A stretch of 64,000 nucleotides of DNA from Haliotis rubra (lineage: Eukaryota), in NCBI RefSeq assembly GCF_003918875.1, contig NW_025765753.1:1-64000 (forward strand). Reading direction: 5' to 3'. Under the pieces are notes generated by a model, which did not search any database, had not been told where the DNA came from, and was given only the letters and a program-made list of their open reading frames with translations. The translations under genes were made by a program, and so were the position numbers. Shown here piece after piece: positions 1 to 64,000 of this stretch (position 1 is its first letter; every line of letters starts with the position of its first letter).

Positions 1-479
1 TGGAAATCCTCTTTATAGTAGCCAAATAGTGCCGGATCCCTTCCAGCTTCCTTTCCGATGAAGTTTAAGACCATAACCTCCGTTTTCATGACATTAAGGA
101 TGACACCACAATACCACAATTTTGATCGCGAAGGTGCTTCAACTTCCAACAGCATATGAAACTCATTAGCATAGGGTTCGTTCACTTCATGCTGGCCTTA
201 TCCTTTACACGCGCCATATATGGACTGCTTCAACTTCCTTCTTTCCTTCTCTTGCTTCTTCTTTATAGCCCACGCGATAAAGGGTGAGATTCATCCGCTT
301 TGAGGAACCGGGTTAATTGTTGTGCCAATAACAGCGATGCCCGAAAACGAATGTTTAGACGCCGTAGCAATGTTCTTGAAAGTGTTGCAAACATTGTCTT
401 CGACTTCATCAGTATTCTCCATTATTGTCGAGATGGAAGAAGTCATGCGTTGATTGCACGACTACGATTGAGTCGTGGA

Positions 480-2460
480 TAAGCTCAAGTCCGCCGTTGT
501 AGGCCCTTTAAGATGACGGCTCATCCATATTAGTTGATATTGTTAAAGGACGTGAGATCTTTGTAGGTGTCTCCAGATAGAGGGATGAAAGGCGCTTTGA
601 ATTTTCGCCTCCCTTCGCCTTGTAGAGATCTTTGTAGGTAGATTTTCAATGTTTCGACTGACATATGATAGATCCCGAGACTGCGGCTCAAGAACCGACG
701 GCGCTGGAACGTGAAATTCATTCCCGTCCGGCCGACCGGCAGCTGGTCTCTTTGCCAGAAACTTATCCAACCCAGATGCATGATGCCGCGATGCAATCAA
801 ACTGTATCTGCTCCCCAAAAGTCCAGAGCGCAAGTATTTCGGACATCCGCCGCCGCCAAGCAAATCAGAACAGAGAGTTTCTGCCGTGTCCCGTATGTCC
901 TTCTAGGTCCGTAGCCACCGCGAGATGCCGCATCACGCTGAGATCCCGCCATACTTCTAAACTTTGCCGTCTCCAACTTCAAAGCTTACGGTTTCGCACC
1001 CCGGCAATTTCTTGGCCGCCTACAGACCCTACGGCGATAACCGCGTTTATGCCGCTGAAAGTATGCGTAGAGTGTTGAACCTTTAATCAGCTTTAGTTTG
1101 TCTTAGATTATCAGTAGAGTCATTATTTCGAGATGTGTTAAAGTTATCGCAGTGAAGTCCTTTCTCTTCAACATACGCTTCCTTCAAAATCCTCTGGTAT
1201 CACATTTCAGGTACGGTCGTCGCATAAGCCGCGGTTGATCTATCGTGAGGGTTAGTAGATCACCGGTATGTCGCTGCCTGGCGAATATCCTCTTCTCTCA
1301 AAGTTTTGATATCGCCCATCGTTGATTTCCGCGTAGCCACATTGGTGTACCGACACGAATTAGGGTCGTCACCGCAGGTTGACTGCAAGTTTTGCGAATT
1401 TCGCTGCACGAATTTGCCGGTACCGCTTCGATTTTCGGCAACACCTCAAGCGTATTGCCGGAGGCGTTTAGTTTCACCGTCTCAGGAAGATGCTTAGAGC
1501 ATCTGCTACCATGCCAGGATTCCTGAACCGGAGACAAATGCAGTATTTCGGTTTGCCGATCATCGTAGACTTCCCAGAGTCCACCATAGATGGTTCGTGT
1601 CCGGCCCGGTGAAGTCCTGAAGCGAGTCCAGACTGCGCCCAGATGAGCTCACGCCCGTAGCGGGCCGCAGTTGTGCTTCAGCAAGTCATACCCAGCGCCG
1701 ATGCGAGAAATTATCAGGCGAATTTCGCCACAAGTAGTGGTAACTGGAGAAAGCTGAGATACGTTTGTTGAGCCTGACTCAACGCCTCTTCCGGGACCAT
1801 CATACGAGCCCGCGAGCGTGACGAAATGAGTCTTGAATAAATCGCAGAGAGTCTTCGTGTGTCGCAGTTCCTCGCATTGAAAGGGAGATTAGCCATTATC
1901 CGTTTATAGGTACCGATGAAGTTTGCCGATCGGGATGATGACCTGAATTTCAACGTCTGTAAAATGCGGCACTGCGAGATCTTCGATGTATATGTGACGA
2001 TTGCTATCACCGAGTAAACAATCAGGCGTCGACGATATGCCCAGATGGTAAGCACCTTCCATTGGCGACGCGAAGATGGAATCGCAGGTACTTCCTTTGT
2101 TCCTATGCCGACGCGAAGATAACGCGATCCGGTGATGATGTTACAGGTAGTCTTTATCGACGCACAGTTGCTCCAGTTGAAGATGCAGTCATTCTGAACT
2201 TCGGCGACTAATGCAGATACCTGCTGAATTCCCATGTTGGTACATGTCGAACTTTCCTGTTCTTCGGTACCAAGAAGATTGGGGAGAAAACCGCGACAAA
2301 GCCCTGTTTATTTCTTTTCGACGCCTTCTTCGCGGATACATGCTGAAATTTCCACTGCAAGAGAATAAAATAGAAGCTGTTGTCAACGGTGTAGCAACAG
2401 CCAGAAGTCTTTTGTTCTCTGCAGAACGGGACGAAGTCGCCCCAGCACTTCACTCTTCCA
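480..2460 (-). mobile_element. Garbled mirror image of DIRS pol (RT/RNase H) and tyrosine recombinase lying beyond position 64000
   Basis: Minus-strand remnants in DIRS order: FSPIFLVPK (~2265-2290), RKYLRF and QWKVL (~2050-2095), MVADALS (~1494-1514), (CPVR)TLKIYLQRS (~625-665), WMSRHLK (~507-528). Confidence 0.7.
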
Positions 2461-4489: not shown

Positions 4490-7400
4490 CGCGTTCGCGT
4501 ACAGCATAAGTCCTTCATTATGCTCTACCGCTACCGTCGCGTCCCGGCCCGCAGTTTCAGGTCTTCACCTGTCTCCTGCAAAATACGTCGCCTCCAGGTT
4601 CTTTAATTAGGTCATTGCGCCCGGACAGTCTTCTTCCGGAACCGTGACCAATCATCAATAGTAATGGAAGTCGAGCACGGTGCCACCCGATCCGGAACAT
4701 TTAGCTATTTAGTCGCACACACCATTCATGATGTAAATGTTTGGTAACGTAGTATTTGTCAAATCGCTGTATGCTTTATTTGAAGTTTCGATTACGTAAA
4801 CCGATCTGGTTTGACAGGTCGCCGTAAAGCTTTTTTTTCCGTTCGAAAAGTAATAAAGCGATTATTGGCATAATGATACCTCCTGAGCCTGGCTAATAGG
4901 TGAATGTCTCTTTCAGACAGATTTTCTTCTTCCTCAAACTCCTGGATAGAAGCCCACGACTGACTTTCGCATAAGCACCGAAACATTGTCATTGTCATCA
5001 ACGCGAAGTTTTAAAGAAAAAGTCTCATCATGTCGCGCCAATTTCCGAAACATCATCGCTCAACGACAGATACGGATTAAGTCAATCGTTACCATCCGGT
5101 TCCAGTCAATAACAGAACCACACTGCAATATATCGACAGTTTCAGATCGCCGCAAAACCGTTAAAGCTTCAACCGTCAACACCCTTTCCTTCACGTTCGC
5201 AGATCGACGAACGCTTCATTCCTTACCCGAAATATTTTCTGTCAGTCTCCGGTTCATTAGCGATGTTCTTACATCTACGGTTTAGTTCAAGGTGTCAACG
5301 CTTCGCAATGAACAAACCAGTCCAACAAGCACATGTACGCTTCACTTTATGCATCATCATCGAACAACAGCTCCAAAGAACAAATCAAATGCGAAAGTGA
5401 AAGCGAGCGTTTACACCGCTTTCAGTTGGGTATTCAATATCGATGAGACCAGCTTCATCATTGTACCAATAGGGAATGAGCAGCCTGGGCTTTCTGTCAC
5501 CAGTAGCCATTCTCAACGTCTTCAACCAAATGTAATCGTTGATTAATAAACACGGCTCAATAAAGGAATATCAAATGTTCTCGATATTGCGTATGGATTT
5601 ACTGTTTTTGTCAATATTCAGGGGACACCAGAAATGGATCAATATCAGTGTTCATGAGTAAGAACACTTCGACTGGTTCGACACCCCGTCCTGTTTCGAA
5701 TACCTGAAACCCTTATCATACCACCATATACCATCTCTGCCGCATCGAATTCCTGCCCGCATCTGCCTATCTGTCGTTACCGATACCGCGGTTCGTAAAC
5801 GTCTTCTGATCAGCGTTTTACACTGTGGATACCAGTAATATCGGTGCGTCCAATACCGAATAACGAAGATTGGAACGCGACTTCAATCTTATCAGCTGCT
5901 CCATCGATGCCTTTCTCATAACGTAATCATCGGTTCGAACACTTCGTTAACAACATTTTTCGTTTTGTTCGTTACATTGTCATGCTCTATTTCAGTCATG
6001 ATTGAATTTTATTCTGAAGCGATTCGTTGATTATTTTCGCTTTATACCAGTCGGGTTTCAAAGATGAAGTAAAAATAATTCAAAGAATTACAGCTCCTTA
6101 TATGCGCATTAACAGTTAACGACGCAACCAATTTTTTCGATGATCGATCGGTTATAACAATCATAATCATGAGATTTTCACCTTCAACGACTAATGAATA
6201 CTGCATCAATACGAACTTGTTAACTCATCTAAAAATCCAGATGCGCCGCCGAAATAATCAGTCTCAATACATCTCAATGCTGTTTTCAGCATGAAATTAG
6301 TCTTCGACAGATGTTCACGTTCACTTCGCGCTAATAACAATACCGTGTTCAAGACAAGCTGTGTACCGTCGTTAAAGAGGCTGGGGAGCAGGCATAACGA
6401 TAGATGTCTGGTTCGACGGCAGTCTGCAGGAGTGCTGTCAGCTGTTTCTCGCAAACAAAAGCCCTCAACACCGACTAAGCCGGTTTCAAACAAGCCGCTT
6501 CGTTAACCAGCACTAAAGATTACTATTCACGACAAAATACCAGCGCATATTGTTTTCGTCATATCTCCATGATATAGTTCCTTTAACTGCTATCTGCCTG
6601 TCAACGATTTGTTGAAATGAATAAAGTTTCAGAAATGATGCGTTGGCCATGTATCAAGTCCATTTAGATACCGGCGGTTAAAGCCAGTTCTGTGGTTTTC
6701 ACAGACTAATAACAGAGATATGCCGATTTATTAACAAGAGAGCCAACTAATAATGGGTCATAAGCAGTTTTATCGCGTTGGCAGGCTATCAAATAACAAT
6801 GACCTGTTATCGTTCGTAAACATACAGACTCTGCCGATGTTACCTTGTTAATATCACAACCCCTAAAGTTGAAAACTTTCATTTCAGCGTCTTCTTCAAA
6901 GACAACTAAAAAATGGAGGATCTGCCACGCGCAGTGGCGAATTCGACGTTGGCGTTCTAAAAGAGTTCTCAATACCGAATTTGCCGTTGTTGCCAGAACC
7001 GAATAAAGACAGCAAATGTCGGTCGATATTTTATTCGCTATGTTTTCCGAGGATCAACGAATATTACCAATAGCTTCCGAAGTTCACCGACTGCTCACGT
7101 CGTTCGCCATAAAGTTAACGTCGATTGCAGGTAACAATACGGCAACATTACCAAACCCTCACAGCTGGAGGCGCAGAACATCAGAAACCAATATCTTCAT
7201 TGTTATGCCGCACTGATTCCTCCCAACATCATCATTGCAAACATAAATTTCATATTCTCATCATATCAGGTCTAAGCACCATTTTGAAGTCGCGTCACCA
7301 GACTCCTCACCGCACCCAATGGCAACAGTTCGATTCGGAGATCACAATGGAACATCAACACGTTATTTCGTCAGTACAATTTCGAGCTTCTTCCCCTTCT

Positions 7401-10200
7401 GGTCGCAGCTTCGATGCGGACGTCATTAAGAGAAGAATGAGCGGGAGTTTACCAGACAGAACATGGTCAGACCGTGCCACAAATCAGGATGAAGTACCTG
7501 TTCATTAAGTTAACGGCGATGACCCGCCTTCAATTAAACACCGCAAATTTCAATGATCATAATCGGCTGGCGAGTTCGTCCGTCAGCATCGGTGCCGTCA
7601 TGCTGCCCACGAAGCGCTTCATAAATCATTAAGATTGGGAAATAACGGTAATTACCGGCAAATAGCGTCGACAAACATTTCGCCCCGATACCTTCCGTTC
7701 GAAGGTCGCGACGCAACATAATTAATATGTCGGTCAACATTCGGCAGCCGTGACATGAACACTGACTGGCCGTCGGGCGAGCTCACCGGAGACGAACAGA
7801 AAAATGCTTCGACCGATATCATTACATTGATCCACGTAGCCAGGCGCACGACCATCAGAAATCACCAAAGCTTCGACCAATTCGTCCATTCCGGGTCATC
7901 ACTTCACTCCACCAGCTAACTATTCTTACCCCAACTTCATCAAAGCCGAGTTGTATGAAACAATCATTGACGTAAAGATCATCAGCGTATGCAGCAGTCT
8001 GACGCCGAAAGTTCACGCCCAAGACAGCATACCAATCTCATCTATAAATCAACATCCTTCAGTTCGAACACAGAACTTCGAGTAAGAAATGACGACACGG
8101 AATATCAAAGACTGATCCCCTCATTAACGGTTGCATCCGAGCAAGCCGCCAGGGAGAGCACAGTTTCAAAACGACTGTTTCTAACCGGCCAGAAGTCGCA
8201 GTACAAAGACGCCGATCCAGCATCACCACAAAGCGCAACCGGGCATCAAACCGACTCTCGTGTATCGGGCGGTCTGTCTGGCCACGGTTCTTTCGCCGTC
8301 TTCAGAGAAGGCTTTATGACTTCTGACGATCTCAACAGGTCAAACAGCTCATCAGTTCTGGTGAGATCGTTCTATAGTCCCATTCCCAGAAGCAGGATGA
8401 ATACGGTGTCGACAAATCAAATGCTCTCATCATCTCCAATCGATACCGATTCGTTCTTTTCAATCCGCTCGACAGAGTCGCTATCGCAGTCAAAGCCCAT
8501 TTTTCCAAGAGCAGGGCATGCCTGCCGTTCAGATCTGGTCCTCATCAACTGTTAACGTACGATTAGCGACATAAGTTAATGAAACTATTTCCAGCCTCAA
8601 CGACCCCACAGCGTATTGATATCATCATTACCGAATTGAGGTTGATTCGCAGCAATACGGTTCGGGATGACTCAGCCAGCGGGTTATCTTCCGGTCGCCG
8701 CGATTCACCATTGTGCTGTCGCCCAGCCAGATATTCGCAAATATGACAATATTTCCACTATCGTTGCGCATAGATTAATACTGACACCTGCATATCAGAA
8801 GATGAAGAAACATTCGCAGCCACATCATTTGATAATAAATGCGCTGAATGCCTTTTGCCGATTATCACGCAGCATTATCATATCCATGATATGGTTGTAT
8901 CATTATGATGCCATCAGTTAACTCACCACCACGTCACGATCATCAATGGCATATTTATTCTGCATGCTTTTTCGAAGATTTCAGCAACAAATGAAGCCCA
9001 AGTTTTGAAAGCGACGAAGTTCTCCGGAATTCAATATCCTTCATTTCTAGATCGGCCGACGGTGAAGAGTTCACGGTATCGTCAGCCTTCTTACGGAGGT
9101 GACGTCGTTACCATTCGTCATATAACCGAGTGAATTATTAGTTTTTCGTTAATCAGCAATATTCATAGCAGTTCGGTCAATCGAACGGACCGAACAATAG
9201 CATGTTAATGATTCGCGCCATTAACCCATTTATCAATAGACGTCAATCAGTCAAGCTTTGTCGATCAATTTGTCTCGTTAGTCTTCAAAACAGTTACGGT
9301 CACCGAAGGCTCATTCGACTTCGTCCCCGTCAAGATAAGACTCGACATATACATTGAGCCGATGCATTATAATTACGCACTTAAAATCCCAATAAATTCA
9401 AAAGACCAAGATGACGTAATGATCGCCGCAATTTCGAAGTGACCCGCAGCGACACGGTAGACATCCAGCCGCTGGTAATGCGTGAAACAATACGGTTCCG
9501 GCTGCTTAGTTCGTAAAAAGCCGACTTCAGATCGTCACTCTTTCATTCCATCATTATCGCATACTCCCCGTTCTTTCCGTTTATCAACAGTCCGAACAGA
9601 TAAAGGCGTTGTTATTCAGCCGAGATAATGAATATTATTTGTGTTGTCGCTGACACCGAAGTCACATCAAAGGCACGACATAAAATATCAACACTTCTTA
9701 AAAATATAGATCAAAATATTGTCAATTTTAAATGCCTTCATCTCAGCCATGAATCATTGACGACACGATGTCAATTAATTATTATTTCGAAATATAGTGC
9801 CATCATGCTCCATGCCTGCGGATATGGAAGCAAATCCGACCCCTCAGTTACCATCATAGCGCGAGATTGTATAAAATCATCGTTAATATTAAATTCCATG
9901 TCGCGAGAAAAACACTTATCGTTCATCAGGCACCAACTGACCGCATCAGCTCAGTACGTTCAACACGCTCATGCAAGAGTTCAATAGCACGCCTGTTGAA
10001 ATAAAGTTTATAAGAGTCACGCCGTTAAAATTAATGTTCGTCGCTCATCGACTGATCGACGTCCGAAAACACAACTAAAACGTTCATAAACGACGAAATG
10101 TTGCAGCGAATTCAAAAATCAATTTTGCCGATAATGAGTCGACGAACCGCGTCCTCGAATGCTCGATTCCTTCGCCTTCAAAGAGTATTTTGTCATGGCC
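4490..10200 (-). other. Garbled mirror of the KIF11 exon 1-12 region (not a real paralogue or pseudogene)
   Basis: ~4500-4600 matches exon 12 (e.g. caggtcttcacctgtctcctgca); ~10170-10280 matches the promoter/ATG region; introns and exons are equally corrupted. Confidence 0.85.
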
Positions 10201-16200: not shown

Positions 16201-16419
16201 AATAGGCCATTTGCTCATCACCTCTCATACATCTCATCATCAACGTCAGTCAAGTGAAAATGTTGACGAAAGAAAATCATTACCTTGTTCATTCGTTGAA
16301 TTGAATTTAGTACCCACCATATGTACTTCAAAGTTTATTGAATTTCAACCGCATTTTACGTTTGTTTTGACATTCGTAGCCTTTATGAAGTCAATGAATA
16401 GCGAAATTATCACTGAATG

Positions 16420-17250
16420 CAGATTATCCGCTTCACCAACCGAGAAAGTCGTTGAAAATCAAGATGGAAGAAGCGCTTATCGGTCATCTTCGTGACCACG
16501 GCATCAATCCGGCACGAACGAATAGTTCGCCCGCAAGCCGTCGCACCACCCAGTGCTCGTGAAAGCGATTTCCAATTCCGCCACCAAAACCAGGTTAACT
16601 TCAATAAGATACGATCGGGTTAAATCCGGCGATCTGAGGTCAGGAGCACATTGCCGCCACAAATTTTATGACGCTTAGTGTGCTGTGGGGCCTGAACCTG
16701 TTGAACAACTTCCGGCATCAACGATTGAAAGAGGGGCGTAGATTGCGTCAGACGTCTGATCATCAGCTTCACGGCAGGTGATCATCGGTCATTCTTCACA
16801 GCAGAATTCGCTCACCTGTAGCAGTCGGCGAAATGTCGCTCGTACATCCGCATTCTTCCATCGCGTCGTTCGTTAGAAACGTGACTATCATCGAACCGAT
16901 CGGTATATTCGAACGTTGGTTTCGACGACGCTGCCGTCGAGGTGTTATCGTAAAGTTCACCCGCCACGACTGAAATGGCGAAGCTGCATACCGATTTATG
17001 GTGACGCAATCGACAGCGATCCAATGCCAGTATCGCCTGAATGCTCACGAGGGCATTCAAGTCGCATTCGCCGGCGACATTTTCAGATGTGAACATTACG
17101 CGTCGGGCAATGGCACGTTGATATTGCGTCAATGTTAAAATGCGAAGAAGACGGTTGCTTCACCGACGCATTTTGCGCTCCTCGCCGAAATACAGTGAAT
17201 AATTTGTCATATCAGCGATCAACCTTTCATACCATCATTGAGACCGCCCG
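16420..17250 (-). other. Garbled mirror of the Tc1 transposase
   Basis: ORF 16812-17132(-) retains QRAIARR and ERRDGRMRMY...HFAD, matching QRAVARR and ERRDGRMRVY...HFAD of the 45294 ORF. Confidence 0.88.
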
Positions 17251-20200
17251 ATTTCCGTCCACGCGCACGTACGAATTCGTGGCTTCAGACATTGTTGACG
17301 AAATCGAAATCATGCCAAAATAGCACGCCTGGTTTTCGATGGTGCGTTTGTTGGTGATGCTCAACATAAACGACTACAGATTACAACAGAAGCAACCTTT
17401 GCAAAACGAATGCCTAATTGATTACGAAACGTTACTACGATGCTCAGAGCATATGATGACGAGCAAACGCTTTAACACTGCTGCTTGCGCCTCATCGTTT
17501 AGGACCCGGAAGTCGACACCACATGTTGGCGAGTGCATTTATCGATGTTCCGCCTATTGAACATTTACAAAGCGGCGTAAAACCATCATCAGTCACCATA
17601 TTGCCTGCAGTTCCCGATTTCATACCAAACACCGTCCACATTCAGTACGTTGCTCAACACGATAACCAAAACATACGCATCCGTCTCCGTTTAACAGCGG
17701 AACATACCCGTATAATCTCGATCGCAGTTTCGACGCGACCGACATGCAACAACAGGCATGAAATATTCACATTCCCGAAGCCTTGCGCCTTCTTTGAAGC
17801 TCCCTTTACCAAAGCATCTGTTATCACAAAATATCTGGAATGTCGAAACAAAGGCATCAAATCGTGAAAGAAACAGATCACGTATCGACGATTCCAGGAA
17901 CAAGGAAGAGAAACCATCGAAAGTACCGCAGCCAAAATATTTGCGAGGCAGACTCACAAACCGGAAATATGGCGACATTGCGCCAGCGACGGCTTCGGTA
18001 GATCTTGTCGTGCATCGGTCAATAGAATGGGTTCACCTGCCAGATCGGCATAGACGAATCATCTATATCATTGTTCTGCAAAACCAACCAGGCGTCGATC
18101 GAAAGAAGAACGATGCCGTTGGAACATTGTTGGTTAGCATCATCATTTTCGGGTATGAATGAATCCGTTTTTTTGTCGTTCATCCGAAAGCTCATCATTA
18201 ATAGGTTTCGATTATTTAACAATAGCGTGAAGCCCATTTCGCAGCCCTTCGCCGGAACATTGCTAATACATCGCAACCAACCAACCGCATCGATCGTTAG
18301 CGAAAGAGTCGACGGGAATCGGGTGAATAAGCGTTTTATCAATATGTCATCGCAATCCTACGATCGTTAAAGCCGATCGTCAATAGCCCGTTCATAGATC
18401 AATCGTCATATAGCCGAACGCGTCCGCATCATCATCATCAGTGTTATGACAAATATCTTCGATATCAACATAACCGAAGCGATCGAAGAATCAGTATCCG
18501 GGTGCCGAACCGTCAATTACGCGTTAACGTATGGCAGTGGTGAGCGTAGTCAACATGAACAACGATCAGCGAATATGATTGTTGTCAATTTATCAATCAA
18601 CCGGAATCGTCGGTTTGCGGTTTTCGTTATCGAAAAAATATTCGGTCTGGTGATTGTTTGAATATCGACTACGCTGTTCCTGTTAAAGCCTTAACATAAC
18701 GACATCAAAGAATTCGTCAGTGCATGACGCATACGAACCAGTTTCATCGAACCGCGTTATGACGAAACTCAAATTCAACGTACAAGAGCCCCGAAGCCAG
18801 TCGACAGTCCGAAACAGTTGCCCGCAGCTCCGATCGTCAGTAAAATCGAAGAAATCAATCTTCATATCTTTTGATATTTTGTCGATGAATTTCTTCAAAG
18901 TAAAATATTCCAGACCATTAGTTCACTGAAGCGTATGGTGATAAAACATGTCGTCAAACGGGATTGCGCCCGTTCAGAATATTTGCAACGCCGCGTAATA
19001 TAGTTCTGAAAACGTACGATGTCTCTCGATACGCTCGTCATTAATCAATAAACATGGCCGTTGGTGAAGATCTCGAACCGGCAATCCAGACTTCAACAAT
19101 AATTCCCAGACCGCACGGCCGCATTGGGCATATTTGTTTGAAATATCCGTACATTCTAATAGAGGGCAAAGTACCAACACAAAAGATATTATAAGTCAGT
19201 CTGATAGTCGCTTTCAGCCGAGCGGTCTGATTCGTGCTACGAAAGTACAGTTAGACAACAATGCATCGTTTTAAAGCGCCTGACACTGCCGCGTTGTTAT
19301 AGTTGGTAACTTGGTTGCGCAATAACGACAATCACAACATTCCAGGACGAAAGTATCTTCATAAGTACGAGCCTGTAGATAATCTCCAGGGTAAGCAGTA
19401 TAGTAGCAATATAGTACAGTGGCAGTAGCAATGCAACAAAGCAACAAATATGCGGTATAAACCGGTACGTTGAATATAAACGCCTCGCGTAAAATCATTT
19501 GAAAGCAACATACGACATAGCGGTTCATAGTACGCGTCAAATACCATAGCTCCAACGCCGAGTTCCGGTTCGATCAGTTTCGAAACTCGCCGCGATATTG
19601 CAAATAGTTACAGCAAAGCGAACATCACCATCAACAATGCGAAAGCAAGTTTAGTTTACCACCAGCAATACTTCGTTATGGCGGCGGTTCGTAACAATCA
19701 TCTGAATAACCAGTGATCAACCCAAATACAATGAAAGAAGACGGAGATATCATAACCAAAATTACAAAATATGAAATATTCATTCCCAAATCCATTTTCA
19801 GGATGCAGCAGTACCAGCCAGTTTCGTCGTTTGTTCGTTTGCTTCAGCAACAGTTGTAAACAAATGCGGGCGAAATATCGTTCATCAGACGCCAATAACG
19901 AGGGTTTGTCGATAACTTCATTAACAACAAAACCGTCAGTAATCACAACGTTCGTTAATCAATAAAAGAAGCAATCGACGAAGTTTCAGGCCTCAGTAAC
20001 CCAAATATTCATATCACGGATTGTGAGCCTGCGTACCCGTTACCTTTTCCAACCAAACATAGCAAACACGTTTGTTTCCGTTCATCAAATATTTGATTTT
20101 ATCATCAAAGAATATTCTTTCGTTCATCGATACTTTTCGAAAGCGTTGATAGACGACCATAATCAAACCTTCAACAGATGCCTGGGGATTATACCCATGT

Positions 20201-22649: not shown

Positions 22650-24500
22650 CCGGCCACCGGCGCCGGTCTTCGCCCACCTCAACAAACTTACCGGTTCACG
22701 TTTCACCGCCCTCTTTCTGCCGCTTCACCGGCATCTCTGTCTTCACGCACAGACTCGCCGTACCACTCGCCTTCTGTTCATTTTCACCGTTTCTGCTGGT
22801 TCATTTCACTGCCTGCTTTCACAGACCTCGTCGTCTTTCACTGTCTCTTGTTGTTCACGTTCTTCACCGCACTTCGTTGATCTTCACGCCCTGGTGTCTT
22901 CAGCACACAACATCAGCCCAGTATTTCAGTTTATTGAGCAGCTTTTAGCATATAATGCACATTAAAGAAGATCCGACCAGACGATCCATCATTCAGTTGA
23001 TTAATTCGTTATTCATCACCATCAGACGAGTCCATTCGCCAGTTCCAGCCATTCATCAGTTCTGTTCAATGTTCATCAGCATCTTCACGTCGATTGTGAC
23101 TTCTGTTCGATTCACGTTCTGTTCAGTTCACGTTAATTTGCCACGTTCATCATTCACTTCTGTTCAAATATCTTCTGTTCATCATTTCGTTAATTGCCAT
23201 CAATCTTGAAACCACGCCAGCCTTCAGTTAGCCGTTCGTCGACCTTTGTTTTGCTTCATCGTTCACGTTCCTGTTGATCGTTCATCATCTTGTTCACGTT
23301 ATCAGTTTCGTGGCACTTTGTTGATTTCACGTTCTTAATCGTCTTCACGTTCTTCACCACGCCATTGTACTTTCAATTTCACGTTCCAGATCTTCACGCC
23401 TTTCGTCTTCACTTCGCCTTGTTGAAACGCCACGTTACCAGACTTTGTTCACGTTCAGCCCTGTTACCAGATCTCTGTTATCTTTCACGTTTTCAATCGC
23501 CGTTCAACGCCGTTTCATCTCTGAAACAGCTTCTAAAGTTGTCTTCAGTTCTTTGAAACCACGTTACCGTTTCGTACCACGTTCAACAAGCCTTCACTGT
23601 TCGCCACGTAGTATTCCCGTGTGCTGAATCTTCGTCTTCTTTTCTTCACCGCATCTTCTTGTTTTCACGTTTATCTTCACTGCACCTTTCTGTTCACGTT
23701 CTTCACTGTTCATGTTCTTTCACCGCATCTTTGTTCACGTTCATTGTTCTGTTCACGTTCACCGTACCGTTCACTGTATCTTTCACGTTCACCGACCTTT
23801 GTTGTTCTCTTTGTCTTTCACGCTTCATTATCACTTGAAACGCCACGTTCGTTTCACCGTACTGAATTGTTCTTCAAAGAACCAATGCCACCGCCTTCTG
23901 TTTTCACAAAACGCACTTCTGTCTTTCAACAGAGAAATATCTTCACGTTCATCAGCTTCGTCTTCGCTTTCGGTCACCGCAGCCGAATTGTTCGTTCACT
24001 TTGGTTCGCCGTGCGTTGTTCATCAGCCTTCGCGATCTTCACGCCACTGTTCACGTTCATTCGTCTTCTTAAATAGTTCGTCGTACAGTTTCTTTTGAAA
24101 CGCCACGTTTCACCGACCCTGCGCCACGCACTGTATTTCACGCCGACTGATAATGTCTTCTGATCAGTTTGCGTTAACGCCACGTTCAATACCGCACACG
24201 CCATTCGTTTGTCTTTCGCTTCACTTCAGTTCTTTGAAATACCACGCCATTTCGTTCAGTTCTTTGAAACGCATGTCGGTTTTCGTTTCAGTTCCCGTAA
24301 AATAATTCACGTTACCACCACGTTCACTGCACTTTATCTTTCATCGCACTTTTCGGTTCACGTTTCACTTCATCACAGTCTGTTCTTCGTCGCACTTTCT
24401 GTTCACGTTTTTCAATAAGCCGTACCACGTTCACCATTCTCTAGCCCACGTTCGGTACCACGTTCTTCATCAGCCGGTTCTTCGCCGTACGTCATCTGCT
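22650..24500 (-). repeat. Garbled, compressed mirror of the 32-bp minisatellite
   Basis: Dense ttcacgtt/tcttcacc words are the reverse complement of the satellite core. About 1.85 kb here versus about 3.57 kb on the right arm. Confidence 0.88.
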
Positions 24501-27500: not shown

Positions 27501-28828
27501 GGAGGGCCGATGTTGGGGTTTCGATTTTGCCATTAAGTGCCTTCAATAGCATATCAGCCTTGAATGAGGACGACGACCCGATCGATAACACGGCCGATAT
27601 CATCACCGACACGGATGGTCACTGTTAGATGCGCTATCGATGGGTGGTAATCAAAGGTTTCTGATCCAGATTAAATTTATCTAATTTGTTCTTCAACTAA
27701 AACACTCGATTCGTTATTTATCAAGATACTGGAAATGCCGCCGCGCCAAATTCCCTATTAATTTGTTATCTAATCACGTAAAGATATTAGCGCCCTCAAA
27801 CGTCACTCTGCCGATCTTCGCCGATTGCGGCCTTATTCATTACAACACATATCATGTCGACTTCTTCGCCCTCTGCCACAGTCAAAAACACTTCGGTGAA
27901 CGTAATGACATTCTCGCTTTGCCCACCAACACTGACTGTTTGCCCGGAAATCGCATTTTATCCCTGGTCATACCGAGTTAAGCTGTGTCAGTCGTTCGGT
28001 TTATCCTTCGTTTTGCAAATGAGTTAGAATGTTATTCCCGTCACATAAGACCATGTTTTCAGCTGCGTTGCAACCGAGATGAAGTCGCTCTAGCTTCAAA
28101 ACCGAAGCTGTCAGTTGCGTGTTAGAGCGAAGGGAATTACCTTCCTCAACACCACCAGTCGATCGACCTTTGGGCTTTTAGGCAGCTGACATAAAACCAC
28201 TTTTCAGGGAGGGTCCGTCGCCTCTGGTTAGCAATCCCGATATAGACATATCCGGGGTCGGGGAGACAATATCAGGAAAGCTGAACTCCGGGATGGACTC
28301 AAAATAGCAAACCACCGTAAGCATGGCGTATTGTCAGTAAAGCTGGTGACAAGTTGTTGTCTCTGGAATGCATGAAAGCTGGTTCAATAGCTCCGAAGCG
28401 AGTGATTTAAAATCGATCGACAGTATTCGGCAGAATATGCGCGAGTGTTCAGTGAAAGCGATGAGATATTTTTTGCCATTTCCAGGAGCATCTACGTTAA
28501 AGATGCGATCAGTCCGTTAGCTGATATGCGAAATCTGGGAATGAACTACGATCGATTTTCCTGGTACGCAGAAAAGGGTCATCTAAGACCGTTGGATATG
28601 AGATTACAAATGTAGCCTCAATCTTTTCTTATGAAACAGGTGAAGGAGTGAAAGCGAGTGAGGAAAGGAAAGGAAAGTGAAAGGAAGTGTGTGTGCAGCG
28701 AGCGCGAGTGTGGTTTCTCCGTTACCAGTTTTCGATTTGAAAGAAAGTTTGTTTTACCGCCACCGTATTTTCGCATAATGTTTCGCGAAGAGCTTTTGTT
28801 GAGAGCAGGTGTCCACTTGGACGTACCC

Positions 28829-34272: not shown

Positions 34273-34344
34273 GGCGGGCGTAGGAGACGGGGAGACCGAC
34301 TCGGGGTATTGGGTGGAGACGGAATGGACATCAGGGTGGAAGAA

Positions 34345-37300: not shown

Positions 37301-37910
37301 CGTGAAGACCAACAAGGGCGCTGGTGAAGAAACGTAAAGACCAAAAAGGGTCCAGGAAGAGACGTGAAACCAACAAAGGGGCTGGTGAAGAGACGTGAAG
37401 ATCAACAAGGGGCTAGTGGAAGAGACGTGAAGACCAAGAAGGGTCTGGTGAAGAGACGAAGACCAACACGGGGGCTGGTGAAGAGACGTGAAGACCAACA
37501 AGGGGCTTGTGGGAGGAAACGTAAAAGACCAAGAATGGGGCTGGTGAAGAGACGTGAAGACCAACACAGGGACTGGTGAAGAGACGTGAAGACCAACAAG
37601 GGGCCTGATTAAGAGACGTGAAGATCAACAAGGGTCTGGTGAAGAGACGAAGACAACAAGGGGCTGGTGAAGAGACGTGAAGACCAAAAAAGGGTCTGGG
37701 TGAAGAACGTGAAGACCAGCAAGAGGGCTGGTGAAGAGACATGAAGACCAACAAAGGGGCTGGTGAAGAGACGTGAAGACCAACAAGGGGCTAGTGAAGA
37801 GACGTGAAGACCAAGAAGAGGTCTGGTGAAAAGACGTGAAGACCAAGAAGGGGTCTGGTGAAGAGACGTGAAAGACCAAGAAAGGGGCTGGTGAAGAGAC
37901 GTGAAGACCG
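34345..37910 (+). repeat. 32-bp minisatellite, ~110 copies, consensus CTGGTGAAGAGACGTGAAGACCAACAAGGGGG
   Basis: CTGGTG starts at 34385, 34417, 34449, 34481, 34513, 34545 (period 32). Purine-rich plus strand; sub-variants and higher-order duplications present. Confidence 0.97.
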
Positions 37911-43709: not shown

Positions 43710-43890
43710 AGTGAGTGAGTGAGTGTAGTTTTACGCCGCATTCAGCAATATTCCAGCTATATGGCGGTGGTCTGTAGATAATCGAGTCTGGACCAGACAA
43801 TCCAATGATCAACAGCATGAGTATCGATCTGCGCAATTGGGATACGATAACATGTGTCAAGCAAGTCAGCGTACCTGACCACCCGACCCC
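43710..43890 (-). mobile_element. SINE family B, 5'-truncated
   Basis: Family body; degenerate TSD GTCCATAGCACG/GTCGATAGCTCG. Confidence 0.85.
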
Positions 43891-43924
43891 GTCGATAGCT
43901 CGCTAATGATCAATCTGTATGGTG

Positions 43925-44930: not shown

Positions 44931-44967
44931 AACAGCCCAATTGTTAAAGCGTTTGCTCGTCAATATA

Positions 44968-46492
44968 TACTCTCCCAAAAAAGAAACGCATCATGAAAAT
45001 AGCAATTTCATGTAGCAATGAATTAAAACGTGATTCATTTTACAAAAGGTTTTGCTCTGTTTATGAGTCCTATGGTGTTTATGTTTGAAACATCACAACA
45101 AAACGCACCATCCGTAAAATACCCGTATGTAACAGCATGATTTTCAATTTCGGCGTGTAGTGTCACAGAATACACAATTCACATGCAATGCACGTGAAAG
45201 TTGGAAATCAGATAGTCTCAATGATGGGTATAAAAGGTTGATCGCTGTCTGTCGAGTATTCACTGTATTTGGAATATTGTTGACGAACGCAAAATGCCAC
45301 GTCTAAGTGAAGCCAACCGTCATATCGCCACTGGTTTGCTTGAAGCTGGCCAGTCTCAACGTGCAGTTGCCCGACGCATGAATGTTCACCAAAGCACCAT
45401 TTCACGGCTCTGGGAGAGATATCGCCGGCAGAATGCGGTAGCAGATGCCCCTCGTAGTGGGCGACCTCGAACGACCACTGCGGCGCAGGATCGCTACATC
45501 CGGGTACATCACCTGCGTCATCGAACAGCTACGGCGACCAGTACCGCTCGACAAATACCCGGATTGAGGAGGCTTTCTGCACAGACCGTCAGGAACAGGT
45601 TGAGAGAGGCTGGTTTACGTGCCAGAAGACCTTATTTTGGCCCTGTGCTTCGACAACAACACCGTCGACATCGAGTTCAGTGGTGCACCAACGTTCAGGC
45701 CTCAAACCTACCGAATTGGCGTAGAATCTGGTTCAGTGATGAATCACGATTTCTATTGGAACGACGCGATGGAAGAATGCGGGTGTACAGACGTCGACGT
45801 GAACATTTCGCCGACGCTTGCGTTCCCCAGGTGGGCAGATTCTGCTGGGGAAGTGTTAGGATGTGGGGAGCGATCACCTGCCGTAGGAGAAGTGATTTGG
45901 TGATGATCCAGGGCAATCTGACAGCTCAACGGTACTGTGACGAAATCCTACGCCCACACCTCCTTCCAATCATTGATCGCCAGAGGGAGTTGTTTCAACA
46001 GGACAATGCCAGGCCCCACACAGCACGTCACACTAGAGACATCCTCCAGAACAACAACATCAATGTGCTCCCCTGGCCCTCAAGATCACCGGATTTTAAC
46101 CCGATCGAACATCTGTGGGGTGCCCTGGACAGACGGGTGCGACGCTGTAACCCTCAGCCCCAGACATTTCAGCAACTCGCACAGGCACTACAGGCAGTGG
46201 GCTGCGATTGGGCAACACGAGATTCTGAGACTTATTCGTTCGATGCCGAGACGATGCCGTGCAGTTCTGGATGCCCACCGTGGTCACACGAGGTATTGAC
46301 TTCAGCGCCACCACACGTCTCCATGTGACACTCAAACTGACTTTCCTCGAGTTGGTGCCAAATACGGATAAGTCTGCATTCCCAGTGTGCAATTTCGCTA
46401 TATTTCATTGACTCATAAAGCCTACAAGATGTCTCAAAATAAACATAAAAATACAGTTGAAATTCCTATCTGCGTTTCTTTTTTGGAGAGTA
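44968..46492 (+). mobile_element. Tc1-family DNA transposon (~1.5 kb), near intact
   Basis: Terminal inverted repeats TACTCTCC(C)AAAAAAGAAACGCA (44968-44990) and TGCGTTTCTTTTTTGGAGAGTA (46471-46492), sitting in a TA-rich palindromic target. TATAAAA at 45229-45235 upstream of the transposase. Confidence 0.93.
45294..46299 (+). CDS. Tc1 DD34E transposase with one frameshift near 46195
   Basis: N-terminal HTH, GRPR linker, FSDESRF, FQQDNARPH and SPDFNPIEHLW with 34 residues between the second D and the E. The canonical C-terminus (LIRSMPRRCRAVLDAHRGHTRY*) is in another frame ending at 46299. Confidence 0.9.
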
Positions 46493-48534
46493 TATATTGT
46501 GAGGGTAAGACACTAAATACTAATTCAACAGACGTAGACAAAATTGTGGATTTTCTCGTCAACATTTTTCTTTATCTCACCACTTGACCTAAGTGGCGTT
46601 GAGTGAGTGGATGTATAGGGAGTATTTGGTGACTGAGTGAGCAAAATAATATTTTTGAGAGCAATCTATATATTCCTTTCACAGCTGTAACCAACCAATA
46701 TATTTGAACAATATCAAACAATCTATTCATCTTTACCTTCATTATTTAATTATATTTACGTTTGTGTATTGTCCATAAACCAAATTCTTCATTTCTTTTA
46801 AACCACTGCCGTCAAACTATTCGTTTGGGGCATATCTCGAACAAAATATTCTCCAACCCTCAACCCGAGAAATCAAGATGGAAACACTCCAAACATGCTT
46901 AAGGATAACCATTGCAGTTCCCCGTGTCTCTACTGTATGAACATCTGCTAAAGGAGATAGTCTAGTAATGCATTATCCTTCAGAAGCCGTCAGGGTGTGT
47001 TGAATAATTAGTTATACACGCCAATCAGCCATGTTATTCTCCAGGACCAGGTTGTCATTCCTAAAGAGGCTCGGCTCGGTCAGTTGTCGGTTTCAGCAGA
47101 TTTCGTGCAACATTTATTTATATATACATGTAGTCATTTTGTTTTTGTTTTCGCCTTTAGCGGCCATCCATAGGTCTGCCTGCTAGAGTAACTGCCCTTT
47201 ATCAAAGGGAAGTAACTCTAACCCGAATCTATGAGACATCGCGTTTATTTAGAGTAAAATATACCAAAGACCCTGTGTACATGCGTCTTAGGATATACGC
47301 ACAAAGACAAAATGAGACGTGTTCTATGGGCACACCGGCACTTATTTTGGCCATGTCCAGCCGTTTTGAATTGGTGGAAAAGACCGCGGAGGTCTAATGC
47401 TCTTCCTACTCGGATACAATGCCGTCCGGTAATTCCGCGCACATAAGCACATCGATCGCAACACGGCAACTAACGTCTCTTATTTTTTTGTGATTTACGT
47501 GACTAAACATGCTGGTATGCATCATATTTATATAAGACTATAAGATTCTAACGTTGCATTATGCCGTATGGTTGACCTTACCGGCGTTCTGACGACTTCG
47601 CTTGTTGTCCGGTAATTCTGCGCAGCAACTGATGCGCATAACATCCAGCTGGAGATCCGAAGTATGGAAGCGTATTAGGGCCAGATTATTTTCAAAAATC
47701 ACTTCATCAATGTAAGGAAGAGTGTTTCATATTAAATCCAATTATGAATAATGAAGAAAAAGGTTTAAAAGTCTGAAGAAAACGAATTTTTATAAAACTG
47801 TCAATTAATCTGTCAGTTTCTGTTACATTGTATTTACTTACCTTTAGTGATTAAAAGCCAGTCCCTTGTAGAAATGTCCCGATTTCAAGCGTAAATGTGG
47901 TAGCAGACAATTTTACCTTCGATACGGAAGTACGCTATTGCAGCTGCGCAGAATTACCGGAACCTGATATCGCTGGATGATAGTGATTAAGTTTCTTTTG
48001 CAATATTTATCTTCAAGGTGCACAACCGAGTAAAACACAGTGTTCAGTATCTTAAAATCGTTATGATTGTTTTGATAGTTGAAACATTGACCTCTTGCGT
48101 TTTTCTTCATATTCCGGAGGGTTCCGATTGACAAGTGCGACGCCATGTGTTTGTTTGTTAACAGGGAGGCATAATACACTGTACTGTAATAGACTCTGTT
48201 TATATTGCTATACATGTACCAGTAGTTGAAGATGAATACCATTTAAATTGTCAATGTTTAAAAAATGCATCAGATAGAATGTTTTCCACCTAACCTATAT
48301 ATTGGTAACCCGTGTAAAGATAGTCTCGTTAGTCTTGTGTCATCTAAGGATGATGTTTTGATAAGTGTTGCTACTTTTTCCTTAGTAGGGTATATTATGG
48401 CTGTACATTGTACACAAATGTTTTCACAGCTTTCAGAGGCAATAATGTATGACCATTACTGGTTTTACCAGCATCAAACCAAAATGTAAAAATATTCTGT
48501 AATGTGGGCCATGGCCTTGTATACTGAAAATAAA

Positions 48535-48567
48535 TCTGTCTGTCTGTCTGTCTGTCTGTTTGTTTGT
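48535..48567 (+). repeat. (TCTG)n/(TTTG)n microsatellite
   Basis: Direct reading of the sequence. Confidence 0.9.
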
Positions 48568-50359: not shown

Positions 50360-50530
50360 CTGTTTGTTGTTTAACGCCGCACTGGGCAATATTCCAGCTA
50401 TATGACGGCGGTCTGTAGATAATCGAGTCTGGAGCAGACAAGCCAGTGATCAACAGCATGTGGATCGATCTACGAAAGTGGGATACGATGACATGTGTCA
50501 ACCAAGTTATCGAGTCTGATCACCGATATC
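50360..50530 (-). mobile_element. SINE family B, partial
   Basis: aatattccagctatatgacggcggtctgtagataatcgagtctgg...gggatacgatgacatgtgtcaaccaagt. Confidence 0.82.
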
Positions 50531-52447: not shown

Positions 52448-52686
52448 GACCCGTGAAGATCCGGATTAGAATTGATCTTCAGTAACCCATGCTTGTAAGA
52501 GGCGACTAACGGAATCGGGTGGTCAGCCTCGCTGACATGGTTGACACATGTCATCGTATCCCAGTTGTGTATATCGATGCTCCTGTTGTTGATCACTGGA
52601 TTGTCTGGTCCAGACTCGATTATTTACAGACCGCCGCCATATAGCGGGACTATTGCTGAGTGCGGCGTAAAACTAAACACACTCAC
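52448..52686 (+). mobile_element. SINE family B (no tRNA head), full length
   Basis: Starts GACCCGTGAAGATCC; body cactggattgtctggtccagactcgattatttacagaccgccgccatatagc; tail shared with family A; 15-bp TSD TCAAGGTAGCCTATC. Confidence 0.9.
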
Positions 52687-52799
52687 TCAAGGTAGCCTAT
52701 CACTGGACATAGGATACTGAGAGGTTGTTCTGTTTATCGATCAACCTTGCCGTTAAATGTCACATATGTTATGTGAAACAAGCCCCTCCGACAATGTTA

Positions 52800-53230: not shown

Positions 53231-53232
<2 letters not shown>

Positions 53233-53312
<80 letters not shown>
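53233..53312 (+). repeat. (GT)40 microsatellite
   Basis: Perfect dinucleotide run. Confidence 0.98.
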
Positions 53313-53313
<1 letters not shown>

Positions 53314-54710: not shown

Positions 54711-61904
<7,194 letters not shown>

Positions 61905-62347
61905 GTAAGCCTGTCACTCAGCTTGCTGTCGGGGGGGGGACTGGTGACGGGGTAGGGATCACATTGGAAAATCTTTAGAGGGATAGAGGTTGAAATTATT
62001 GTCAAATTTGGGGAAAAGTTGACACTATTTGAAACAAACTGGTATGATGTATGCATTTTGCACTTAAAATGTATTTTGCTGGATTCATTGTTATTATCGA
62101 TGTGCATACTTAGTTGAAGGCTTCAATAGCAGATCTGTTTAGTTCTGTGCTTTTAGTATAGTTCCTACAATTGTAGAAGGTGACTTAGTGAAAGATATAT
62201 GGATTTTGAGAATAAATAAATTTCTTTAGTGACAAAGTTTCATTATTTTCATGAAATACAGCAGAAACCTGTACTCAAATGCATACATTTATTGAAATGT
62301 TTTTAAATTTAATGTCATAAATATTTCTGCATTAGTTTACATATATT

Positions 62348-64000
62348 TTTCCTTATCCTGACTCATGCTTAATTGCTTGTCTCCTTCTTGCGAAAGGTAG
62401 TGGAACACTTGAATCCCCTTTTGAAGCTCCCTTCAAAAAAACGGATGTAAAATCACTCACCCAGTGTTATCTCCCTTTAGCTGTTTTGGCGGGAAACTCC
62501 GTCACATGACCCCACATGTTTTCACTCTCTCCTTCTTCGCCCTAGAGGACGTTTATGAGAGCGCCTGGGTCCCCTATATGGCGTTATATCCTTTTATATT
62601 TAGGCCTTTACTACTAAATTAGCTTTATACGGCATTTACGATTGATATACCAGCAATATGGTTTGAAATTTTTGTCTAAATTATCTGTTTATTCACGTTG
62701 TTGACAGTTTTTTTTATCTTGTTTACAACTGATGAAAACTTGCATTCGTTGCAGATACCGTTTGTCGGTTGCTGATTCGCATTTATTATGTCCTAATTGT
62801 ACTTCAATTGTTCTTCCAGGTTTCGCTGTTAACTTTGTCAGCATTTATCTGAATTTGAATTTAATAATAATTTGTATTCCATTCTTAGACATGCCAAGGA
62901 CAGGTCTAGACGACTTTTACAAGTCATGTCTAAACCGAGTGATTGCGCTGATAACTGTTTATTGCTGTCTGCTGACATTCACTATTCCAGTGTTTTACCG
63001 GTTGCTTCTACGGAGCATGTCGCTGTGACTGATTGCAGCTCAGCATGGACAACGATGAATCTGCAATAGATGTTCCAGAGGAGCCTTTGGGCAGGAGCAG
63101 AACCAGACGTTCACTGGAGCATAGCAGATCCTCCTCCTCAGATACGGACAGCCATCAGGAGCCTGCGCGCAGGCACCCTACATACTGTAGAAGAGAATCT
63201 ACACCTTCACGAAGGCACAGAGACACGTCTCAAGGCTCCAGGGAAGATCCTTATCTGAATCAGTCGCCTGCATGCAGGTCTCCGTGCAGGTCTCCACGAA
63301 GACCTCCACGCAAGTCTCCATGCAGGAAGGAGACACAATGGCAACCATCTCCAGAACAAGAAGCCTCTAAATCTGAAGATGATGGTGGAATCATATTTTC
63401 CGATACTGAGATCAAATCTTGGATGGCAAATGGATTAGAACTTGCATCACCTTCTGAAGAGGATAATGAAGCATTCACGTATATGATGTCTAACGAGGAC
63501 TTTGATACACTTACCCTTCCACCCATCGATCCTGTCTTGGATGTATCGGAGAACCTCAGCACAGCCTTCTGGAAGGCAACGAAGTTCCAGAGTCAAAGTG
63601 TCCCACCATTCAACGCCAAGAAGTTCTCTCTTCACCGCATGGAACCCTTCATGAAGGCCCCATAGATAGATGAGAACTACAAGATCATCAACGACTCCTG
63701 ATCTAGGACTTATAAAATGGAGGATAAAAAGTTGGTACAAATAGACACAACTACCAAACGTACCTTCTTTGGTCTAGCCAGGTCAAGAGCCATCAATGAA
63801 ACCCTCATCGTGAAGTTTAGAAACTTGACCTCTGAAGAAGATAGAATGATCTACTCGTCATTGCCGACAAGGATTGCTGTCTTCCTGTAGTTGGAGTGAG
63901 CGCTTCACCAAGTCAATATACAGAGCTCCGTGGTCAGCATCATCTATCTTCGCAGGGGAAATTGAGGACGTGGCCAAGGAAGTAACGAAAGAGTCAAGGG
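62348..64000 (+). mobile_element. DIRS-like tyrosine-recombinase retrotransposon, 5' part, in KIF11 intron 12 (left boundary approximate)
   Basis: ORF1 begins with a C-x2-C-x7-D-x-H-x2-C-x2-C motif (62732 MKTCIRCRYRLSVADSHLLCPNC) followed by an S/R/P-rich gag-like region (63033-63665). The fold-back mirror of the downstream sequence shows DIRS-type RT, RNase H and recombinase motifs. Confidence 0.72.
62732..64000 (+). pseudogene. DIRS gag-like ORF1, interrupted by frameshifts/stops
   Basis: Cys/His motif in the 62732 frame; frame changes to the 62872 and 63033 ORFs (RSPCRSPRRPPRKSPCR); another frameshift near 63660. Confidence 0.55.

Follow-up and report, generated by a model that had tools for sequence, protein, structure and literature searches.

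A window-wide asymmetric palindrome in a Haliotis rubra contig, with one clean and one noisy arm, of probable nanopore fold-back origin

Fold-back reads and the blacklip abalone assembly

Fold-back artefacts account for 0.55–0.6% of Oxford Nanopore (ONT) gDNA reads (PMC12870357). Their junctions often lack an adapter and are missed by Porechop, and the authors of that study report that such reads can tangle assemblies (PMC12870357). A related degradation has been described for inverted duplicates read in nanopores, where the second arm translocates faster and bases are missed, over a stretch equal in length to the preceding complementary one (PMC7229812). In 2D chemistry, a linker joins the two strands and the same uplift of second-strand current is seen (PMC7229812). 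The blacklip abalone assembly was produced from Albacore-called MinION reads using Porechop and wtdbg and DBG2OLC backbones, followed by Racon and Pilon (PMC6774278).

The stretch analysed here (hereafter the window) comprises the first 64,000 nucleotides of the forward strand of Haliotis rubra contig NW_025765753.1. It combines a palindrome with noise that is one-sided, deletion-dominated and strand-asymmetric (Table 1). Our analysis indicates that the window is very probably of technical origin, a nanopore fold-back read used as a contig backbone, in which the left arm would be a mis-read copy of the right.

Table 1. Features of the 64,000-nt window and the basis for each
Feature	Start	End	Strand	Basis or remark
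Outer continuation of the noisy arm	1	2781		Clean partner would fall beyond window position 64000
Noisy arm, deletion-riddled reverse-complement copy of 28817–63926	2782	28816	-	Collinear, uniform noise
Apex or turn-around zone	28776	28848		5-bp/2-nt mini-hairpin inside (28811–28822); palindromy without support from alignment
Clean arm of polished and seemingly genuine genomic sequence	28817	64000	+	Tc1 contig match, intact KIF11 exons, TRF arrays
(CA)11/(CACT)n microsatellite, ~100 nt from apex	28921	29009	+	TRF; left mirror CTTTC-like
32-bp purine-rich satellite, 113 copies	34343	37909	+	TRF; left mirror 23008–24522
Tc1-like transposon, 21-nt terminal inverted repeats	44961	46499	+	Pfam DDE_3, HTH_Tnp_Tc3_2
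KIF11/Eg5 (kinesin-5) motor-domain exons	56551	58709	+	Motif scan, PDB phmmer

Geometry of the palindrome and its apex

An earlier note on this DNA had proposed that the whole window is one asymmetric palindrome, and this was confirmed by two comparisons of the arms. All 39 HSPs from a blastn search of 1–28816 against 28817–64000 were minus-strand and collinear, with identities of 66–81%. Unique 12-mers common to both arms were predominantly inverted (809 vs 110 direct), and 712 of the 809 inverted anchors fell into a single monotonic chain running outward from the apex to 2782 on the left and 63926 on the right. The left arm, read from 28816 back to 2782, was therefore collinear with 28817 to 63926, at an overall left/right length ratio of 0.74 (26,035/35,110). 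Local ratios ranged from 0.71 to 0.85 and dropped to 0.53 across the 32-bp satellite. Arm-to-arm identity was about 58–63%, with a column identity of 58%.

The apex motif named in the earlier note, GTCCA-CT-TGGAC, was found exactly at 28811–28822. The accompanying claim of essentially no spacer is not demonstrated, as the innermost ~30–50 nt on either side of the apex gave no convincing alignment, and as many as ~70 nt there may be non-palindromic. Over the first 50 bases of the right arm, counted from the apex, the left arm carried 16 extra bases; among the intervals listed, the only others reaching that number belonged to the misaligned satellite edge. Fold-backs were taken to have reverse-complement halves of one locus that meet at a common coordinate, to within about 200 bp, and here the inverted chain ended ~65–75 nt from the apex on both sides. 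Adapter sequences were also aligned to this noisy region. The ONT Y-adapter, top and bottom strands, scored no better at the apex than in the rest of the window, and the hairpin adapter scores at the apex were equalled by 551 and 260 of 1272 null windows. A resemblance to the hairpin adapter seen by eye (shared 7-mers) was dropped since the alignment scores lay inside this null distribution. No adapter or hairpin was thus recognisable at the apex, although in sequence this noisy such comparisons say little for or against one.

The outer segment of the left arm (1–2781) was evaluated with a 5-mer Markov classifier trained on noisy versus clean sequence, for which held-out noisy sequence scored +13 to +82 LLR/kb and held-out clean sequence −20 to −99 LLR/kb. 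Scores of +11 to +30 LLR/kb were obtained for 1–2781, which suggests that the noise extends to window position 1. Neither arm ends within the window, and by this classifier the left arm still scores as noisy at window position 1.

Distribution and nature of the differences between the arms

Intact exons, repeats and the transposase ORF were confined to the right arm, in agreement with the earlier claim of one clean and one corrupted arm. Three KIF11 exons were recognised on the right, coding for the P-loop (about 56551–56697), switch I (about 58242–58340) and switch II (about 58635–58709). Their left mirrors (8645–8742, 7357–7459 and 7067–7120) were all frameshifted, with 53, 19 and 26 bases deleted, respectively. 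A PDB phmmer search with the right-arm exons matched human KIF11 with E-values of 1.5e-18 and 3.7e-11, and a homologue search with the KIF11 exon ORF returned only fragments of 61–84% identity and no same-species short-read contig. The transposase ORF of the Tc1-like element (45294–46328; 344 aa) was intact and 94% identical to its best homologue, while the mirror of the Tc1 stretch 45013–46380, at 16416–17424, was broken. A 210-aa ORF at 63033–63665 had no Pfam match and no homologue in the search, so the label of DIRS gag given to it in the earlier note is unsupported.

The tandem repeats followed the same pattern. A perfect (GT)40 and all TRF tandem arrays were restricted to the right arm; no tandem repeat with a TRF score of at least 100 was found in 2782–28816, and simple repeats were almost absent from the left arm. 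The left mirror of the microsatellite nearest the apex was systematically mis-read as CTTTC-like units. The satellite mirror had 42% of the length of its right-arm counterpart, and the lag-32 self-match of 0.67 in the right-arm satellite compared with a maximum of 0.31 over all lags in the mirror.

Ten ORFs of at least 130 aa were present in the left arm, nine of them on the + strand, where stop trinucleotides are scarce in this arm. When ten ORFs, five from each arm, were looked up exactly in a collection of 15 billion proteins, none was on record, so the look-up does not distinguish the arms. An Rfam scan found nothing, and a tRNA-Ala called by ARAGORN at 16498–16592 was judged spurious, as it lies inside the noisy Tc1 mirror and has no counterpart in the clean arm.

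Three-way comparisons were used to assign the changes to one arm or the other. With a Logan short-read Tc1 contig (L001) as the outgroup, the left arm had 756 private sites, the right arm 7 and the contig 15; the right arm was 97.5% identical to this independent contig over 1371 nt, with 3 gap columns. A relative-rate test on 34 SINE triplets assigned 2830 changes to the left arm and 193 to the right. The mirror of a SINE was also further from its partner than are paralogues unrelated to that pair. Judged by these comparisons, nearly all of the change is on the left arm. A genuine palindrome should have arms that are near-identical or symmetrically diverged, whereas the column identity reported above was low and the change was one-sided.

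Per right-arm base, the left arm showed 61% match, 9% substitution, 30% deletion and 4% insertion. Nearly all of the 3178 deletion and 869 insertion events were shorter than 10 nt and a single gap reached 50 nt or more, so that no difference of TE size separates the arms. The error level was even in every 2-kb bin along the arm. With respect to sequence context, error rates by 5-mer spanned 11% to 88% (chi-square 2318, 978 df), those of 5-mers and their reverse complements were uncorrelated (r = 0.07), and A>G was 3.4 times as frequent as T>C (p = 5e-84). The left arm is without any polished stretch: exact matches between the arms reach 27 nt at most, and the best identity over 200 columns was 0.815. 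Based on this profile, the arms appear to differ through read-out noise rather than divergence.

An ancient inverted segmental duplication, in which ordinary mutation had left one arm to decay as a pseudo-copy, would fit an arm identity of merely ~58–63% and a functional-looking gene in one arm. However, neutral sequence (the Tc1 element, SINEs, microsatellites and satellite) was likewise intact in one arm only, and the relative-rate asymmetries (756:7 and 2830:193) also speak against this scenario. So do the distance of the SINE mirror from its partner, exceeding that of unrelated SINE paralogues, the lack of TE-sized indels, the strand-asymmetric and context-bound substitution spectrum and the erased satellite periodicity. 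Taken together, we assign an ancient duplication a next to negligible probability.

Among technical sources, missed SMRTbell adapters also yield template-complement palindromes, and a PacBio CLR read with such an adapter could have been written out as a palindromic subread. The PacBio CLR error profile is insertion-rich and near-random, unlike that of the left arm, where errors were deletion-dominated (27–30% deletion vs 4% insertion) and k-mer specific. In addition, the blacklip abalone assembly contains no PacBio data (PMC6774278), and this source is considered extremely improbable.

Origin of the noisy arm

The earlier note had favoured a nanopore read of template and complement with a poorly called second strand. 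The noise observed here, being k-mer-bound, strand-asymmetric, one-sided and deletion-dominated, lends support to that reading. From the sequence, we infer that a single read was the source, that the platform was nanopore and which arm was read first. According to the proposed mechanism, a long nanopore read would have followed one strand, turned at the fragment end (~28817) and continued along the complementary strand, and the assembler would have taken this read as a contig backbone. Other reads aligning to 28817–64000 would have corrected that part to consensus quality, while 1–28816 would have attracted no reads in polishing and stayed as raw basecalls. The second arm was likely pulled through the pore too fast as it re-annealed on the far side, so that bases were missed, and this is the likely reason for the ~27–30% of bases that are missing. 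We consider it highly likely that the left arm is an artefact of this known kind, the nanopore fold-back, and neither real genome nor part of a biological palindrome. The fold-back read would have to measure at least 64 kb as called, an extreme value among the read lengths reported, and this speaks against an artefact.

As a sub-case of the artefact, a hairpin-linked read from a 2D LSK208 library may have been basecalled linearly, with template, hairpin and complement written as a palindrome. The abalone data include five LSK208 libraries, with Albacore 2.3.3 basecalls throughout (PMC6774278). The linker chemistry with its second-strand current uplift (PMC7229812) and the ~70 nt at the apex that are not demonstrably palindromic would also be in line with a 2D origin. 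However, LSK208 reads had mean lengths of 2.5–7.4 kb and an N50 of 3–9 kb (PMC6774278, Supplemental Table 1), in comparison to the read of at least 64 kb that is needed, and the hairpin sequence matched no better than chance. A 2D library was first favoured and then downgraded on the N50 values in that table, and is now regarded as unlikely. Given that the N50 of the LSK108 libraries was 17–32 kb, a 1D LSK108 library is the more likely source of the putative fold-back read.

The remaining rival is a real, near-perfect chromosomal palindrome at the KIF11 locus, with arms of at least 38 kb, a short spacer or none, and one arm unpolished; spacer-less palindromes of 38 kb are rare and unstable, which counts against it. 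Here, a spanning read would have served as the backbone, its second arm would have been mis-called by the inverted-duplicate effect, and polishing reads would have gone to the clean arm. Genuine inverted duplicates give exactly such second-arm degradation in nanopores (PMC7229812), and at ~60% identity with 30% deletions the arm would presumably recruit no Racon or Pilon reads, whether real or not. Even a real perfect palindrome could keep one unpolished arm if reads preferred the clean one, a point against the artefact. Yet the 53 Gb of nanopore reads over an abalone genome of 1.4–1.6 Gb imply roughly 35x coverage (PMC6774278). At this depth, reads coming in from the far side, together with those contained in one arm, would be expected to yield a reasonable consensus, or else the arms would have collapsed. 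The noise also appears to reach window position 1 before any clean flank resumes, and ONT gDNA commonly contains fold-back artefacts (PMC12870357). A real palindrome is therefore regarded as quite improbable. If real, the KIF11 locus would be duplicated, and its second arm would survive in the assembly merely as a raw, unpolished ghost.

On the preferred reading of a fold-back read, about 29 kb (45%) of the window, and probably more upstream, would be a mis-called duplicate that should be masked or removed. The biological significance is low; the relevance is one of data hygiene, and the stretch deserves a flag. The noisy arm would inflate assembly size, give rise to false ORFs and at least one false tRNA call, conceal how the chromosome really continues leftward of 28817 and mislead scans for ancient palindromes, pseudogenes or diverged duplications.

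Comparison with described systems

The window resembles the ONT fold-back reads described by Heinz, Meyerson and Li (2026, PMC12870357) in having opposite-strand halves of one locus that join at one coordinate, and in the junction, which in those reads usually has no recognisable adapter and is missed by Porechop. Unlike those reads, the structure reported here is fixed in a finished assembly, has arms of at least 29 kb as called, and is of far poorer quality in its second arm than an ordinary read. The missed bases, wrong calls and compressed length after the junction correspond to the observations of Spealman, Burrell and Gresham (2020, PMC7229812); that study, however, dealt with genuine inverted CNVs in yeast and human using signal-level data such as current uplift and samples per base, whereas the present case is known from basecalls alone. 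As in ONT 2D or 1D-squared template-complement reads, a strand and its complement appear as one molecule, but unlike 2D reads no hairpin was recognisable, and the read would be too long for the 2D libraries behind the abalone assembly. Lastly, gene-carrying inverted arms of tens of kb are shared with genuine large palindromes, such as those of ampliconic sex-chromosome regions and breakage-fusion-bridge fold-back inversions. The arms of genuine palindromes are near-identical or symmetrically diverged, whereas those described here are ~60% identical with all of the change on one side.

Geometry and extent of the inverted repeat

The palindrome in the window sequence (no N; G+C 43%) is real and far above chance. 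BLASTN of positions 1–28816 (the left, noisy arm) against 28817–64000 (the right, clean arm) returned 39 HSPs with 66–81% identity and many gaps, all of them minus-strand and collinear, while unique 12-mers common to both arms numbered 809 in inverted versus 110 in direct orientation. A single monotonic chain accounted for 712 of the 809, running from the apex to left position 2782 and right position 63926. These results bear out an inverted repeat of the whole window, as claimed in an earlier note based on sequence alone; its arm ratio matched the overall left/right length ratio of 0.74, and its apex motif GTCCA-CT-TGGAC was located. Per 2-kb step, the ratio was 0.71–0.85 throughout, except for 0.53 over a satellite array.

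The reach of the noise was assessed using a 5-mer Markov classifier trained on a portion of the noisy arm together with the matching clean sequence. Held-out noisy pieces scored +13 to +82 LLR/kb and held-out clean pieces −20 to −99. Positions 1–2781, whose partner lies outside the window, scored +11 to +30, and therefore the noise probably runs on to position 1; if so, the noisy arm is at least 28.8 kb as written and corresponds to ∼39 kb of true genome. Towards the apex, clear homology begins ∼50–70 nt away on both sides, with 16 extra left-arm bases opposite the first 50 right-arm bases, an excess equalled, among the windows listed, only at the misaligned satellite edge. The ONT Y-adapter and hairpin sequences used as queries gave no match at the apex above the window-wide null. 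At the turn, as many as ∼70 nt may be foreign or unreadable; alternatively, it may be noise only.

Contents of the two arms

The contrast previously claimed between one clean and one corrupted arm was confirmed, with KIF11 exons, Tc1 ORF and arrays intact only on the right. In the right arm lie motor exons of kinesin-5 (KIF11/Eg5) in which the P-loop, switch I and switch II are all intact. They match human KIF11 at E = 1.5e-18 and 3.7e-11 (PDB phmmer) and have homologues named kinesin family member 11; the mirrors (left-arm counterparts) of the three exons lack 53, 19 and 26 bases and give no sensible translation in any frame. Neither exact look-ups of ORFs nor a homologue search with the KIF11 exon retrieved sequence from the same species. 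All eight TRF rows scoring ≥100 fall in the right arm and none in the left; they include a perfect (GT)40, a (CA)11/(CACT)n array and the 32-bp satellite. Long homopolymers, dinucleotide and tetranucleotide repeats number 17, 3 and 6 on the right versus 2, 0 and 1 on the left. The satellite mirror retains 42% of the satellite length and no periodicity (best self-match 0.31 at any lag; the right arm reaches 0.67 at lag 32). The satellite itself gives rise to long minus-strand ORFs, the largest of 415 aa, which are spurious. The label "DIRS gag", given earlier to an ORF near the right window edge, was not upheld: a Pfam scan and a homologue search of a 5.8-billion protein set (E ≤ 1e-5) both found nothing.

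Coordinates of features in the two arms
Feature	Position	Arm	Description
Apex motif	28811–28822	apex	
Tandem array	31017–31269	right only	22/44-bp unit, GTATTCCGAATGTATGCCGACG
Purine-rich 32-bp satellite	34343–37909	right	3.6 kb, 113 copies, consensus AACAAGGGGGCTGGTGAAGAGACGTGAAGACC
Satellite mirror	23008–24522	left	
Tc1-like element	44961–46499	right	intact 344-aa transposase (Pfam DDE_3, HTH_Tnp_Tc3_2)
Tc1 terminal inverted repeats	44961–44981, 46479–46499	right	
SINE-like repeat	34071–34245, 43712–43892, 50361–50524, 52460–52689, 55824–56063	right	∼170–240 nt; at least five copies, 83–88% alike, both orientations
ORF labelled "DIRS gag"	63033–63665	right	210 aa
tRNA-Ala call (ARAGORN)	16498–16592, minus strand	left	95 nt, inside noisy Tc1 mirror

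Spurious features were also found in the noisy arm. ARAGORN called no tRNA at the clean-arm position matching its tRNA-Ala, which is probably a product of noise. Stop trinucleotides occur at 40.7 per kb on the plus strand of positions 1–28816, compared to 49–54 for the three remaining arm-strands, and this stop-poor strand thus yields nine spurious ORFs of at least 130 aa, with no Pfam matches among those tested.

Error profile and direction of change

The arms were compared by piecewise global alignment anchored on the 12-mer chain. Per right-arm base, 60.6% matched, 9.2% were substituted and 30.2% were absent from the left arm, with 4.3% extra in the left; excluding the satellite, matches rose to 63% and substitutions to 10%, while deletions fell to 27%. 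Relative to the right arm, the left showed 3178 deletion and 869 insertion events, mostly of 1–9 nt. Only one gap reached 50 nt and no insertion did, and therefore the arms contain no transposon-sized difference. Error rates were uniform across all 2-kb bins. No exact inter-arm match exceeded 27 nt, and identity over 200 columns peaked at 0.815; there are no polished stretches in the left arm.

Mutation of double-stranded DNA is approximately strand-symmetric over tens of kb, whereas a single-strand read-out is not. Base error probability depended strongly on the 5-mer, from 11% (TGATG) to 88% (GCAGT; chi-square 2318 on 978 df), and showed almost no correlation between a 5-mer and its reverse complement (r = 0.07; test of symmetry, chi-square 974 on 410 df). 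A>G occurred 3.4 times as often as T>C (p = 5e-84); for G>A relative to C>T the factor was 1.7. Hot spots in the noisy arm (2782–28816) centre on the A of CAG (TCAGT, TCAGC, ACAGT, TCAGA and GCAGT, 69–88% error), and A miscalled as G is by far the commonest change; together these may be a signature of the basecaller model under fast translocation.

Relative-rate comparisons identified the arm that had changed. The outgroup for Tc1 was a Logan short-read contig (run SRR24940897) encoding the closest transposase in the database (94% identity), which aligned to the right-arm Tc1 across 1371 nt at 97.5% identity, three columns being gapped, but to the left mirror in two fragments only (73–85%). 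Private sites in the three-way alignment numbered 756 in the left arm, 7 in the right and 15 in the outgroup. Across 34 SINE-like triplets (right-arm copy, left mirror and right-arm paralogue), which overlap and hence are not independent, they numbered 2830 in the mirror versus 193 in the right-arm copy, in the same direction in 34/34. SINEs were more divergent from their own mirrors than from unrelated paralogues (∼15% divergence). Since neutral sequence cannot decay in just one arm, an old diverged duplication is ruled out, and the left arm equals the right arm plus noise. Run SRR24940897 comes from a DNA-virome study of heart tissue of green sea turtles in Queensland (PMC11281379); the presence of a near-identical Tc1 in reptile-derived reads suggests either that the library was cross-contaminated or that this Tc1 family was recently transferred horizontally.

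Origin of the noisy arm

The noisy left arm is very probably an assembly artefact of an already known kind. Its deletion-rich, k-mer-bound, one-sided errors support the earlier reading, a nanopore fold-back with a badly called second strand. A genuine perfect palindrome could look identical in the assembly if a single spanning read had supplied the backbone and the clean arm had drawn every read used for polishing. However, spacer-poor 39-kb palindromes are rare, the noise never yields to a clean flank inside the window, and fold-back reads are common. Moreover, 53 Gb of nanopore data for a 1.4–1.6 Gb genome (PMC6774278) amounts to ∼35x, which should give a better consensus or collapse; on these four grounds we consider a genuine palindrome highly improbable.

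It has been reported that fold-back artefacts make up 0.55–0.6% of ONT genomic reads, that in fewer than half of them the junction includes more than 11 bp that do not map, and that they escape Porechop and can tangle assemblies (Heinz, Meyerson and Li, PMC12870357). The blacklip abalone assembly used MinION reads, Albacore 2.3.3, Porechop, and wtdbg and DBG2OLC backbones, followed by Racon (x2), Pilon (x1) and QuickMerge (PMC6774278), methods consistent with a fold-back artefact. After assembly, the long reads, like the short ones, would map to the clean arm rather than to a ∼60%-identity copy, which would leave the noisy arm untouched in polishing. The fold-back could instead be a hairpin-linked 2D read basecalled as linear, as five LSK208 libraries are listed; yet their N50 is just 3–9 kb, versus 17–32 kb for 1D LSK108 libraries (PMC6774278, Supplemental Table 1), so that, given a required fold-back length of ≥64 kb, a 1D artefact is more likely and a 2D origin unlikely.

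The biological interest is low; the left 28.8 kb, together with any sequence further upstream, should be flagged and not mined as genome. After an inversion junction clears the pore, translocation of the second arm speeds up; bases are consequently skipped or miscalled along a stretch whose length is governed by the complementary sequence read before it, an effect likened to uplift in the discontinued 2D chemistry (Spealman et al., PMC7229812). This second-arm degradation fits the left arm's 27–30% deletion, its length ratio and its k-mer-bound errors.
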